Positions 3,926 to 9,743 of a DNA stretch of 64,000 nt are shown piece after piece; positions within the stretch are counted from its first letter, which is position 1, and each line of letters opens with the position of its first letter. Under the pieces are notes generated by a model. It was given only the letters and a program-made list of their open reading frames with translations. It did no database searches and was not told the origin of the DNA. Source of the stretch: Dimorphilus gyrociliatus (Eukaryota > Animalia > Annelida); NCBI GenBank assembly GCA_904063045.1, contig CAJFCJ010000001.1, positions 1,798,001 through 1,862,000 on the forward strand. The letters are read 5' to 3'. Both the position numbers and the translations under genes were made by a program.

Positions 3926-6625
3926 ATGGACGGTAATGTTTAAATCAATATAAAAACTTTATAAAGTAGGTTATGTATATTTTTTTATTCTTTTATATAT
4001 AGGATACTATCAATCTGGACCTTGTCGGGCACCTTGCGATCCTTGTTCGCCATGTGTACCACCTCCTATTATTAGTAGAACAACTATTGTTTTTGAATTA
4101 TTTCTGAAGGTTTTATAATGATATTTTCGTAGATTGCACACCTTGTCCTATTCAAGAACCACCTCCTCCTTGCAGACCTCATGAAATAAACAATAAAGTA
4201 AAAAAGGATTGTAGAGGTATAATTTTTCAAAGGTTTACCACCTGGTCTTATTAATTGTTTGCCTAAAAGGTGCTCCTTATGGTGGCGCGCCAACAACGTG
4301 TGTATCAAATCCATGCGATCCGTGTTCGATGAATCAAGATCAGATCGATATGGATATAAATGGTTTAAAGTTCATAAACGGGGGACAGGGTCAGTTATTA
4401 TTTAATCTTTCTTCGTTTATCATTGTTTATAATTAAGTAACATATAATTAGAACATGTCATAAATTAATTCAAACAAATTGCATATTAATTATAAGTTTA
4501 CCAAAACAACATAGCTAACAACCTATTTTTTATTTTGTAAGGAGCCGGAATGCAAGGATCAGGACAGGAAACGATGCACGGAGAAGGAATGAATAATCAA
4601 CCTTGCGTCTCAAAAAAGTATCAAGAGTGTACTGGATGTTCTAATACATTATTTGCTTCACAGACTGGAGGAGCTAACAAAATGTTGTGTTTCATGTACG
4701 ATCTATGGCAAAAAGAGAGACTTTGCGATGTTATTATTTATACTCAAGATGGAGAAATGTATGCACATAAAATCGCTTTAGCTGCTCATAGCGAAGCCCT
4801 TGCAGCGCGATTTGCCGATTATCAGCCAAATGAAGTTCTAGCGTTAGATTTATGCGAGTTCAGTTGCGCCTCAATATACATTATTTTATATTTCGTATAT
4901 ACGACTGAACTTGTACTTGAAGAGGCTGATCTTGGCGAAATAGTTGCAGCTGCTGTAGAGTTAGGTTTAACCTGTCTTATTGAAATTGCAAAGAATCATC
5001 TGTCAAGGTATGATTCTTCAAATGTTCTTTGCTATCAGGTTGTTGCTGCTCGGGCTGGGTTATGGGATTTGGAAAGTGAAATGTATCGATTTATTTGCGA
5101 TCATTTTGTAGATGTAATTAATACTGGTTCGTGGGAAGCTATCGGGTTTCAGCGTATGCAGGACATCCTCTCTGATTGTAATATAGTTATAAGAGGTGAA
5201 TTGGATGTGTTTACTGCCATTGTTAAATGGATTGACTATAAAAAATGTCAGAGAATAGCGTACGCTCCTTGTTTGATGAAATTAGTTTCGCTTGATTGCA
5301 TTTCTCCAGACGATCTGTACTGCCATGTTGAGCCGGTTAGGTTTTTATTCGATATATGCGAATGTAAGGAGCAATTATACAATGCTTGGAGATATCATGC
5401 GATGAGGTGTAGCTGTCAACCTCTTCCCTGTGAGCCCGCCAGACAAAGAAGATGCGCTGGAACAGAATTCACAATTGGAACACGATCTTCTTGTCAACAA
5501 AGAGGAGTTGGATGTTCGTTGGGAAATTCTATTCAACCAAATCGACAACTCCCTGGAAGAGTTAGGAGTAAAGGTGTTATGAAGAATGAAAATGCAAGCA
5601 TGAACAATAATCTGACTCTTTTGGATAACTTAAATACATCAGCAAATGCATCAACTTTAGGAAGGATTGACAATGGTTTAATAATTGTTGGTGGTATAGA
5701 TTTAGAGAATACCAATGGTTGTGAACCTGTACAGAATGCTTATCGTTTCGACAAGACCACTAACGATTGGCAAACAGCAGCCTTGATGGAAAATAGTCTT
5801 CACCATCATGCATCTGCTATAATTGAAAAAGACCTGTACATATTCGGTGGTATCATCTTTGATAAGAAAAATCCAACAGAACTAGGAAAGATAACTAAAA
5901 AGTGTTATGTTTACCATATCGTATCGGGTAGTTGGGAAAGACTACCTAATATGATAGAACCTCGTTCTCACTCGGGTGTTGCTGTTCATACGGATAATAT
6001 ATATCTTGTTGGTGGAGAAGGTGTGTGCAAAAATCGACGACGGAAAATATCTCTCTCATCTGTTGAAGTTTTCAATATTTCATCCCGAAGTTGGAATAGA
6101 ATTCCTGATTTGCCTGGCGCAGGAAGGGCTTCTGTCGGTGCTTGCACCTTTAAAAATAAAATTTTCGTTACTGGAGGAATTAATTGTGAACAATCGAATT
6201 CTCTGTTAAACAACGTCCTTACCTTCGACATATTAGAACGTTTTTGGGAGGAAAAGAGACCACTCTCCATCCCAAGATGTCATTCTCACTTAACAGTTTG
6301 CAACGATCAACTTTACATGACAGGTGGAAGGCAATACTTGAATGGTAATAAAACTATACAAATCTCATATGGAGGAATCGATATATATGATGAAACTGAA
6401 GATGTTTGGAAGGAAGTCGGTAAATTAATCACTCCAAGACACGACTTTGGATGTACGTCTATTTCAACAAAAATTTACGTAGCTGGTGGAGTGCAGTGTA
6501 AAAGTTCGGGTTCATATACTTGCCTACGTTCGGTGGAAACATTCGACGTTGTAACCAAGAAAACACAAGAAGAGCCTAACTTATTGAGACCGATTGCGGG
6601 CGGTTTTTGCATTTCAGACGTATAG
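3926..6625 (+). CDS. BTB-BACK-Kelch (KLHL-family) protein with Cys/Pro-rich N-terminal extension. Exons 3926-3932, 4003-4074, 4133-4216, 4270-4389, 4542-6625; about 788 aa.
   Basis: The 691-aa ORF has a BTB start (LCDVII...AHKIALAAHS), a BACK domain (ELDVFTAIVKWI) and about six Kelch repeats (IIVGG, YIFGG, YLVGG, FVTGG, YMTGG, YVAGG). Four upstream phase-1 GT-AG exons splice in frame; these are less certain than the core ORF. Confidence 0.85.
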
Positions 6626-6838: not shown

Positions 6839-9743
6839 ATGTATAAGATAATTGCTTTATCGCTCATATTCTTTACCTTTTCGGAACAATTTAAATATAA
6901 AGCCGTTATAAAGAAATGTAAAGGTGATAATAGGGATTCAACTCAAATAGGATTAAATCTAAAGCAGGTTCTTAATAATAACTATGAAAACTCTTATTCT
7001 TCAAATGATCCTGAACACTTAGATGGATTGAATTGTGAAAGAATGATATCATTGCACGTTGAATTAAGCAACAATGGAAAGGTTTAAATGATTAAACTCT
7101 GATTAACTAACTTATAATTCATTTTTTTCTTTTAGACAAATAAACAAGAATATTTAATTGTCTTTTCGAAAGTTTATGATGAAGTATTAAAACAAGATAT
7201 AAGATTAACGTCTCAAATAGCCGTCAAATTAAGACAAGATCCACTAATGCTTGCTTATGAATTTCATCATGAATATGTTAGCATGTTAAATTTTTCATTT
7301 AAAGATATAACTTTTTCACTTTAAATAGAATGTTAACAATAAACCTTACGAGGTTGTTTACAACCGAAACGAAACTACTAATTATATTGGATGTTCGGGT
7401 TCTGATACGATTGTGAATTTATGCGGATCAGAAAATCGTGGATTCTGTTGTAGGTGTGCCCTGGGTCATAGAACTCAGGCGAGGGGAGGACAATCTTGCG
7501 GAACAAAATTTGGCGAAGAGGATGAAGATGTTCATGCCAGTACTCACTGCCTTCGATTTGATTCTCTCTACTATAGCGTGAATAGGCTATCTTTACCTAA
7601 AATTTATCAGCGGGTATCCATTCAATTGTACGAAGGAGAGAAGGAAGGGCGGAGAGGATGGAATAATTTTACGGATGAAGCTCCTATTCAAGTTGGAACT
7701 GATATACCTTATCAAAATGGTAAAGGAGATCAATTGTATGTTCAATATAAGGATATTGAATTTATGCCTGACAAACTACCGATTGACTTTGTCAGTAAAA
7801 AGTTATTAGTACCAACTGCTCTTCACGTGACAGAAGGTCAACAAATTCCAAAACAAATACAACGTCAACGTCTTCCAAAAAACTTTCTTATAGTTGATTC
7901 GAACTTAATTGATAACAGTCATCAATCTTGCGACAGAACTGGAATGAATTCGGCCGCATTTTTGAAAATGACAACTCCTTGCCAAGTTCCAAGGAGAGAG
8001 ATTTTACATGAATAAATCACATGGATAATTCGCCTAATACTATTCATTTATAAATATTAAAATGATAGAATGTTACGTAATTCATTCAAATCTCCCTCCA
8101 GACATACTTGTATGCATAATTCACCAAAAGACTTATTCGTCAGCGACGAAAAAAGGGTAAAGAGGGGAGAAAAAGGCAGATATCTTTTAACTAGCTTTGG
8201 TAAACTTATCGAACCTCCAGTTATAATGGAAAATAAGAATAAAGGAAAGCTTCGATTCCTTTTTGATACTTCACAACAAACCAAACTCCGAATCAATATT
8301 AAAGCTGATCAATTAAACTTTCTCGATTCACAACCGGAAGCAGAGATTGTAAAAGTTACTTTTAGTGGTTTTAAAGCCAAATCGGAAATTTTGGTGTACG
8401 TTAGAAATCCTTTAAGAATCGTATCAAAGCTTAGTGTTCGTCTAATTAAATGTGATGATGATTTTCGCTCATTAAGTCAACCTGATACATTTAAAAGTAT
8501 AGGCCCTAACAGAGTAGACCTGTTTGAATTTCATATGTTACCAGACCAAAAGCAATCTGAAATTGGTAAAAATATAAAAAACTTAAAAATGGATATGGAC
8601 TCGTTTATTAAAGGAAATGATTCGGCTAGTTTAAATAGAAAGATCTCGACTATAAATCAAGAGAAGGTATCATCAAAAAGCTGTCTAGTTCAAGTGTTAG
8701 GTGAACGAAAACAGGTTATTTCAAAGCGAAAAATCAGCTACAAAACAAAAGACTCTTGCGTTTGTCTATTATATTGCAAATGCACTTGCATATCTGATCA
8801 TACTAAATGTAAACCTATTTCCAAAGAGGAATGGCAGGCTGCCGGTTTTAGCGGCTTCATACCAAAATCTAGATCTCTTTTTTCCGGGCACGCTATCCTA
8901 ATTGAAATTCTTTTACTAGTATGTCTTTTCGGTTTGGTGATGGGATGCATGAAAGTTCTTTTAGGATCTTTTTTCATCGAATCATTCAATAAACATGGCT
9001 TGGAAAACTTCTATCCTTTAAAAAGAAATAGCAAGAGATCTAAGTCGAATGACTTTTTAATTAATTGTTGCTTTTTCATCATAGCTCCCATTTCGTTATG
9101 TTCATCATTTGTCAATAATTTTAGAAGTATCTGTGGAATGCCATTAAAAAATTCCACGAGAAAGTACACTCTACTTTCCTTGGAAGACAATAATATAAAT
9201 CTTGAAAATGAAAAATTCAACGAGCAATCTATTCAAACTGAAGAAAGTAAAGAACGCCTTATTATTGCAACTTCAATTAGACCAAATAGAGTTAATGCTA
9301 TGAGCATGAGCACGCTATCTCTTCTTCCCGTTGTATATCTAAACCTAATTGAACCAACAAAGTTACTTCTGGTAAAAGCTTGTATAATGTTAATTACTTC
9401 TAACACTTTTGTTATTATTTAATAAAGGAATCTGGAAAGCGTTTTTCCCTTGCAGGAGTTTTATCAAAATTCAATGAAAATTCTTATACTTTTCAATTAG
9501 GAAGTTATACGAAACAGGTAATACTTTAACTAGCTAAAATTTATTATAACTGTTTATTTCCTTATTTTTCTATAGTTATTCAAACTTGAAAATAATCAAA
9601 GAGTATTGCTAATACCTCCAAAATCAATTAATGAAACTGATTTTAATCTGTTACTTAAAGAGCATGAAGCAAAAGGATTATTATCAATAGTTCCACAATT
9701 TCCCTGTCTGAATAAGAAAGATACAGATTATGAATATTATTAA
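6839..9743 (+). CDS. HAP2: HAP2/GCS1 class II gamete fusogen. Exons 6839-7081, 7136-7276, 7329-7993, 8102-9371, 9428-9517, 9576-9743; about 830-860 aa.
   Basis: Signal peptide MYKIIALSLIFFTFS is followed by NNKPYEVV, GFCCRC...ARGGQSC...ASTHCLRFDSLYYSV, CDRTGMNSAAF...CQVPRHTCMHN...DEKR...GRYL, a domain-III end CVCLLYCKCTC and a TM helix (ILIEILLLVCLFGLVMGCMKVLLG). The motifs match HAP2-GCS1 family signatures from memory. The exon-4 donor could alternatively be at 9291. Confidence 0.88.

Follow-up and report, generated by a model that had tools for sequence, protein, structure and literature searches.

The 64,000-nucleotide (nt) stretch analysed here (the window, in whose numbering all positions are given) comes from contig CAJFCJ010000001.1 of assembly GCA_904063045.1, the genome of the annelid Dimorphilus gyrociliatus. 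At positions 6839-9743 of its + strand lies a gene matching HAP2/GCS1, a male-gamete fusogen that is conserved in plants, protists and 'probably some invertebrates' and for which no vertebrate or fungal member has been identified (PMC8784728). Scripted splicing of its six exons gives a single open frame of 858 codons, from the ATG at 6839 to the stop codon at 9741-9743, and a type I membrane protein of 858 amino acids (aa). The public record covers the C-terminal 60% of this gene. The exon-4 open reading frame (ORF; 8070-9419) is 100% identical to the NCBI protein DgyrCDS483, encoded on this contig at ~1.806 Mb; this 519-aa product starts at a Met within intron 3 (8070) and is devoid of exons 1-3.

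The best match in a representative search of 1.84 billion proteins (P0002, 226 aa, 60% identical) is an ORF on Logan contigs from samples SRR23372228 and SRR31984834 (L002 and L003). It belongs to a second species, probably another dinophilid with a compact genome, hereafter called the relative. The features of the D. gyrociliatus gene are as follows, slashes marking splice junctions:

Exon 1, 6839-7081, + strand: residues 1-81; start codon, signal-peptide-like hydrophobic N-terminus (residues 4-13) and start of the ectodomain, with Cys27 and Cys66.
Intron 1, 7082-7135, + strand: 54 nt, GT-AG, phase 0; at the matching position the relative has a GT-AG intron of 55 nt.
Exon 2, 7136-7276, + strand: residues 82-128; strongly conserved with the relative and aligning to animal HAP2 proteins.
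Intron 2, 7277-7328, + strand: 52 nt, GT-AG, phase 0; at the matching position the relative has a GT-AG intron of 66 nt.
Exon 3, 7329-7993, + strand: residue 129 to codon 350 (its first two bases); tip of domain II and central ectodomain.
Fusion-loop (cd connection) region, 7440-7550, + strand: residues 166-202, from GFCCRC to THC, placed from alignment A1.
Intron 3, 7994-8101, + strand: 108 nt, phase 2, GA-AG (AAG/GAGAGA ... CTCCCTCCAG/A); the frame requires its removal.
Exon 4, 8102-9371, + strand: residues 350-773; rest of domains II and I, domain III, Cys-rich stem, transmembrane helix and start of the tail.
Stem motif CxCxxxCxCxC (CVCLLYCKCTC), 8757-8789, + strand: residues 569-579; near-invariant Cys columns in alignment A2, also present in the relative.
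Transmembrane helix, 8892-8963, + strand: residues ~614-637; Kyte-Doolittle 19-residue windows above 2.0, aligning with the transmembrane segments of other HAP2 proteins.
Intron 4, 9372-9427, + strand: 56 nt, GT-AG; acceptor as in the public model.
Exon 5, 9428-9517, + strand: residues 774-803, cytoplasmic tail; in agreement with DgyrCDS483 and conserved with the relative.
Intron 5, 9518-9575, + strand: 58 nt, GT-AG, phase 0.
Exon 6, 9576-9743, + strand: residues 804-858 and stop codon; conserved C-terminal cytoplasmic block.

Introns 1, 2, 4 and 5 are all GT-AG introns of 52-58 nt; such very short introns agree with published work on the D. gyrociliatus genome (74 Mb), whose median intron is 66 bp (PMC7854359). 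The window is A+T-rich (~27-43% G+C, for ~30% in the genome), and an exon 4 that stays open for 423 codons at ~30% G+C is far beyond chance. This exon is identical to residues 11-434 of DgyrCDS483. Between 9372 and 9455, several AG acceptors are candidates for intron 4: exon starts at 9428 and 9440 are in frame and a start at 9456 is out of frame, the public model using 9428.

A reading made earlier from the letters alone (the sequence-only reading) had named this gene an animal HAP2/GCS1, and had proposed a search with the Pfam profile PF10699 and a structural comparison as ways to check it. Both bore the identification out. The ORF of exon 3 matches PF10699 with 79.3 bits (E 3e-22, profile positions 114-291) and that of exon 4 with 60.7 bits (E 1e-16, profile positions 290-512), for a curated gathering score of 27.4 bits. 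The two matches cover consecutive ranges of the profile, and the exons of the relative likewise pass the cut-off. Among proteins of solved structure, the exon-3 piece matches HAP2 of Cyanidioschyzon (7S0K, E 5e-8) and Trypanosoma cruzi (5OW4, E 8e-8). As Pfam gave nothing significant on exons 1 and 2 alone, nor on the tail, these parts were assigned through a profile built from 11 animal HAP2 proteins, which matches the spliced model over residues 6-849 (E 3e-142). This profile aligns residues 6-494 as one stretch, straight through the joint between exons 3 and 4, and also aligns the N-terminus encoded by exon 1 with the N-termini of animal HAP2 proteins.

The representative search returned 94 matches, those that are named and full-length being 'hapless 2-like' or HAP2-domain proteins. 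They come from nemerteans (Tubulanus, Lineus), bivalves (Pecten, Solemya), hemichordates (Ptychodera, Saccoglossus), chelicerates (Centruroides, Uloborus, Nephila), beetles and a springtail. Giant repeat proteins were also found, for example a turtle tenascin-X of 4984 aa (E 4e-50). They show up to 25 matched stretches, all against one 34-residue segment (residues 129-162 of the exon-3 piece, ...VQYKD..., window 7713-7814). We rejected these tenascin-X-like proteins as homologues, judging their scores to be a repeat-summed chance likeness to FN3 units. No RNA family was found in the window by an Rfam scan.

Every sequence feature listed by the sequence-only reading was located in the spliced product. 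These are the hydrophobic, signal-peptide-like stretch at residues 4-13, the Cys motifs, the Cys-rich stem, the transmembrane helix and the long tail. Exon 3 carries Glu136 (7350-7352), GFCCRC (residues 166-171), Arg180 (7482-7484) within ARGGQSC (179-185), STHCLRFD (199-206) and CDRTG (329-333), and ends in CDRTG...C346-QVP. The motif C346-x6-C353-MHN exists only when intron 3 is removed as a GA-AG intron, and the D...R...Y stretch reads SDEKRVKRGEKGRY. With its hydrophobic N-terminus, large ectodomain, one strong transmembrane helix at ~614-637 (Kyte-Doolittle mean above 2) and cytoplasmic tail of ~220 aa, the protein has type I topology.

Fedry et al. (2018) used as anchors of the domain II tip seven disulfide cysteines, a Glu in strand b and an Arg in the cd loop (PMC6089408). 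All nine are present in D. gyrociliatus according to alignment A1: Cys150, 160, 168, 169, 171, 185 and 202, Glu136 (in NKPYE) and Arg180. The Arg of ARGGQSC, which had been proposed to be the conserved salt-bridge residue of the cd loop, does stand in the near-invariant Arg column, as part of a near-invariant Arg-Gly-Gly. Further conserved elements in alignments A1 and A2 are S-x-H-C-L-R-F, C-D-x-x-G...F...C, the N of domain III, the CxCxxxCxCxC stem and AAGF before the membrane.

The fold was predicted with AlphaFold and orthologue alignments for two pieces, folded separately, so that the models describe the pieces and not their mutual arrangement. The exon-3 piece (221 aa) has a mean predicted local distance difference test score (pLDDT) of 81.9 and a predicted TM-score (pTM) of 0.63. 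Its nine best Foldseek matches in the PDB are all HAP2 crystal structures (7S0K, 6DBS, 5OW4, 5OW3, 5MF1 and 6E18), those of Chlamydomonas and Arabidopsis included, with probability 1.00, TM 0.50-0.69 and E 7e-7 to 1e-3; below them comes a gap, and then weak rows for flavivirus E and EFF-1. For the exon-4 ectodomain piece (262 aa, mean pLDDT 80.6, pTM 0.61), the best matches are domain 3 of Plasmodium berghei HAP2 (TM 0.66-0.72 on the target), HAP2 ectodomains and archaeal Fsx1 (E 2e-3 to 2e-2). A class II fusogen fold is thus supported by the models of both pieces. Taken together, the Pfam matches, the sequence matches to solved structures, the predicted fold, and the conserved cysteines with the Glu136/Arg180 pair support membership in the HAP2/GCS1 family.

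Three segments lie outside this common core. Domain III holds an insertion of ~40 residues (window 8535-8670, residues ~495-540) with many Lys, Asn and Ser residues and a low-confidence model; other animal HAP2 proteins lack it, and the relative has a much shorter version. In the tail, a second and weaker hydrophobic Cys-rich stretch (window 9054-9125, residues ~668-690, FLINCCFFIIAPISLCSSFV) has a counterpart in the relative. The tail of Chlamydomonas HAP2 is reported to contain a membrane-associated or palmitoylated segment, and by analogy this stretch may be one as well. Finally, the C-terminal end of the tail (window 9300-9743, residues ~750-850) shows conservation with the HAP2 proteins of nemerteans, bivalves and hemichordates (domain E 1e-7 to 6e-12); it is a possible animal-specific tail domain, for which Pfam has no model.

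The relative provides a second view of the gene. Its HAP2 is identical between the two samples over 2757 bases, and lies on a 53.7-kb contig that is syntenic with the window, the same BTB-BACK-Kelch gene (75% identity) being found upstream. There, HAP2 is an intact 805-aa model whose five introns, all GT-AG, match those of D. gyrociliatus in position and phase. Cys27 and Cys66 of exon 1 are both present, as are 19 of the 20 ectodomain cysteines overall. The third codon positions of the BTB-BACK-Kelch neighbour are only ~50% identical between the two species, which are thus deeply diverged. For HAP2 itself, the proportion of synonymous differences (pS) is ~0.72, close to saturation, with an estimated synonymous divergence (dS) of ~2. 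The corresponding nonsynonymous proportion (pN) amounts to 0.23 over exons 1-3 and 0.32 over the exon-4 ectodomain, giving nominal ratios of nonsynonymous to synonymous divergence (dN/dS) of 0.12 and 0.23. Low ratios in both halves indicate that both have been under purifying selection since the species split.

The two halves are joined across intron 3, on which the full-length model depends. Exons 3 and 4 share the same genomic frame, so the length of the intron between them must be a multiple of three. The only nearby GT (7986) lies 8 nt upstream of the GA donor and is out of frame: canonical introns from it to the AG at 8068 or 8101 (83 or 116 nt) produce a frameshift and a stop within a few codons, and were rejected, as were other GT or GC donors, none of which has the right phase. 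In contrast, the 108-nt GA-AG intron yields a joined product, CQVPRHTCMHNSP, that aligns gap-free to the C..P...CL.NQP motif of other animals. The relative has its intron at exactly the same place and phase: AAA/GTATTG...TTTCAG/A in the relative gives C-LVPKDT-C-MHNSP, and AAG/GAGAGA...CTCCAG/A in D. gyrociliatus gives C-QVPRHT-C-MHNSP. A 'VP' after Cys346 is common in other animals (alignments A1 and A2). This conserved VP and the gap-free block after the joint imply that exon 3 extends past 7986, ruling out the GT there as the donor.

The donor AAG/GAGAGA fits the U1 consensus at every position but +2, and the acceptor of intron 3, with a strong polypyrimidine tract, is the best in the gene. 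Downstream of the intron, ~500 codons are open despite the A+T-rich genome. GA-AG introns are a recognised class with RNA-seq support, making up ~3% of the introns of Eurytemora and being frequent in Oikopleura, and human FGFR genes make efficient use of a GA donor with a GT a few bases upstream (PMC7072748). On these grounds, functional splicing of intron 3 from GA to AG seems quite likely, and the gene is most probably the single-copy HAP2/GCS1 orthologue of D. gyrociliatus, with its third intron removed in this way.

Several observations weigh against this conclusion. A change from T to A at donor position +2 (GT to GA) is normally inactivating. The GT 8 nt upstream could be used instead, truncating the protein after residue 347, and intact ORFs are, as far as sequence can tell, compatible with a very recent null allele. 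No D. gyrociliatus protein that spans the joint between exons 3 and 4 or holds exons 1-3 was found in a collection of 5.8 billion proteins, in which the exon-4 ORF, DgyrCDS483 and the exon-3 piece returned only DgyrCDS483 and the exon-3 ORF of the relative. In the protein, near-invariant residues are replaced (Trp of LWY by Tyr, CLxNQP by CMHNSP, W of the LW..D block by F), all three replacements being common to D. gyrociliatus and the relative. In addition, the fusion loops are short, acidic and poor in hydrophobic residues; Fedry et al. (2018) noted short variable regions in animal HAP2 proteins, those of annelids included (PMC6089408).

The most serious of the alternatives built on these observations is that the gene is a very recent pseudogene or null allele, through a GT-to-GA mutation of the intron 3 donor in the laboratory line used for sequencing; fertilisation in this worm would not depend on HAP2. 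Splicing would then fail or shift to the GT at 7986, leaving a secreted fragment of ~350 aa or no protein. The GT at the homologous donor of the relative is in line with this, as is the frameshift produced by the only GT available in the window; so are the transcript-guided public annotation, which has no model across the joint, and the lack of a joint-spanning protein in the large collection. However, the remaining exons are all open and conserved, with 423 open codons past the break at ~30% G+C, the donor is a near-perfect U1 match apart from +2, and sexual reproduction, with dwarf males, takes place in cultures of the species. As for the missing model, annotation pipelines of the PASA, Augustus and EVM type reject non-canonical introns by design. 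A pipeline accepting only GT-AG or GC-AG introns would miss exons 1-3 and start DgyrCDS483 at a Met inside the intron, so that its truncation is expected whether the GA-AG intron is functional or the allele null. We therefore regard a null allele as unlikely. Fixation of the GA donor as a loss-of-function mutation, D. gyrociliatus being a sexual bilaterian caught just after inactivating HAP2, appears slightly less likely again; if true, this natural knock-out would show that annelids can achieve fertilisation without the ancestral fusogen, as vertebrates and nematodes must.

Alternatively, the A at 7995 may be an assembly or consensus error, or belong to a minor haplotype, with GT as the true donor. 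The assembly was indeed based on early PacBio data, which are noisy, and HaploMerger2 was used to reduce it to a single haplotype, but PacBio errors are mainly insertions and deletions rather than T-to-A substitutions, and polishing with Quiver and Pilon, using Illumina reads, leaves very few substitution errors and makes a base error unlikely; we consider this explanation highly improbable. The least credible alternative takes the two halves as separate genes, a protein starting at Met 8070, where the NCBI model indeed starts, and upstream ORFs that are unrelated or decayed, but DgyrCDS483 would then have no signal peptide and be missing half of every discontinuous class II fusogen domain, its first 10 residues are unconserved intron sequence, and the ORFs match neighbouring ranges of a single Pfam profile, can be aligned as one protein with 11 orthologues and have the same exon-intron layout in the relative.

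The neighbouring BTB-BACK-Kelch gene is a single-exon gene encoding 691 aa (window 4550-6625, + strand; 2172-4229 on L002), located just upstream of HAP2 in both species and not among the called genes returned for the NCBI record. Its residues 1-350 are 92-100% identical between the two species, for only 40-68% in the Kelch half, so that very different constraints act on the two parts of one protein.

If intron 3 is spliced normally at AAG/GAGAGA, the gene would produce a protein made up, in order, of a signal peptide, a three-domain beta-rich ectodomain with disulfides, a Cys-rich stem, a transmembrane helix and a tail of ~220 aa, in which a Glu136-Arg180 salt bridge would stand behind the short fusion loops of the domain II tip. 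By homology, HAP2 would be displayed in the membrane of the dwarf male's sperm; once the gametes had adhered, the domain II tip would insert into the egg membrane, and the protein would then trimerise and fold back into a hairpin, drawing both membranes together. By analogy with other HAP2 proteins, it is reasonable to propose that the worm uses this gene for fertilisation.

In a quick maximum-likelihood tree with arbitrary rooting, D. gyrociliatus and the relative form a long branch (stem length 1.78) that joins nemertean and bivalve HAP2 with a Shimodaira-Hasegawa approximate likelihood ratio test (SH-aLRT) support of 87, arthropod and hemichordate HAP2 falling apart from that group. This placement fits vertical descent with what would be fast evolution in the dinophilid line. 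Horizontal transfer and contamination were rejected: the best matches are all metazoan, the tree position is spiralian, the introns are typical of the host and the locus is syntenic with the relative.

The gene is thus an ordinary member of a known family, and the novelty implied by the sequence-only reading was overstated. Animal HAP2 is described in PMC2766252 (2009) from a sponge, cnidarians and arthropods, and Fedry et al. (2018) already aligned the protein of another annelid, Capitella teleta (ELU07639; PMC6089408). RefSeq carries 'hapless 2-like' names in several spiralian phyla (nemerteans and bivalves) as well as in hemichordates and arthropods (chelicerates), and the back half of the D. 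gyrociliatus gene was itself in NCBI with its PF10699 match. As annelid, mollusc, nemertean, hemichordate and arthropod members were already in databases or the literature, the picture of HAP2 distribution is unchanged, D. gyrociliatus being probably one more spiralian that keeps the ancestral gamete fusogen. What is new is the full-length model, which corrects a public record limited to the C-terminal 60% in a small culturable annelid, the putative GA donor, and a likely reason for the broken annotation, the locus offering a concrete example of how a GA-AG intron can break automated annotation. D. gyrociliatus has dwarf males, a short life cycle and a compact genome, and could be used as a bilaterian in which to test the function of HAP2.

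Comparison with known systems places the gene closest to animal HAP2. It shares its end-to-end architecture, the C-terminal block included, with Tubulanus polymorphus XP_074662084.1, Lineus longissimus XP_064623729.1, Pecten maximus XP_033735139.1 and Solemya velum KAL5009314.1. Identity to animal 'hapless 2-like' proteins is 29-33% over exon 3, with full-length phmmer E values of 1e-53 to 5e-75, and the cysteine pattern and Glu/Arg pair are those of other animal HAP2 proteins. Unlike these, D. gyrociliatus HAP2 has a long branch, the replaced near-invariant residues, the ~40-residue insertion in domain III and the GA donor at intron 3. With the solved ectodomains of Chlamydomonas (5MF1, 6DBS, 6E18), Arabidopsis (5OW3), T. 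cruzi (5OW4) and Cyanidioschyzon (7S0K), and with domain 3 of P. berghei (7LR4), it shares a class II fusogen architecture, as predicted in pieces, although identity to solved ectodomains is only ~18-21% and its fusion loops are shorter and more acidic.

The intron 3 donor resembles those of the GA-AG introns of Oikopleura dioica, Eurytemora affinis and human FGFR, which are likewise preceded by AG and otherwise show good complementarity to U1 (PMC7072748). As in FGFR, a GT lies a short distance upstream, here 8 nt; however, the upstream GT of FGFR produces an in-frame isoform, whereas in D. gyrociliatus, where use of the GA donor is putative, it is out of frame. Finally, cnidarians provide the functional precedent. 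Hydra HAP2 is described as expressed in the testis (PMC2766252), and HAP2 antibodies are stated to block fertilisation in Nematostella (Ebchuqin et al. 2014, as cited in PMC6089408). The male-gamete role thus has experimental support in cnidarians, whereas the annelid gene is known from its sequence.

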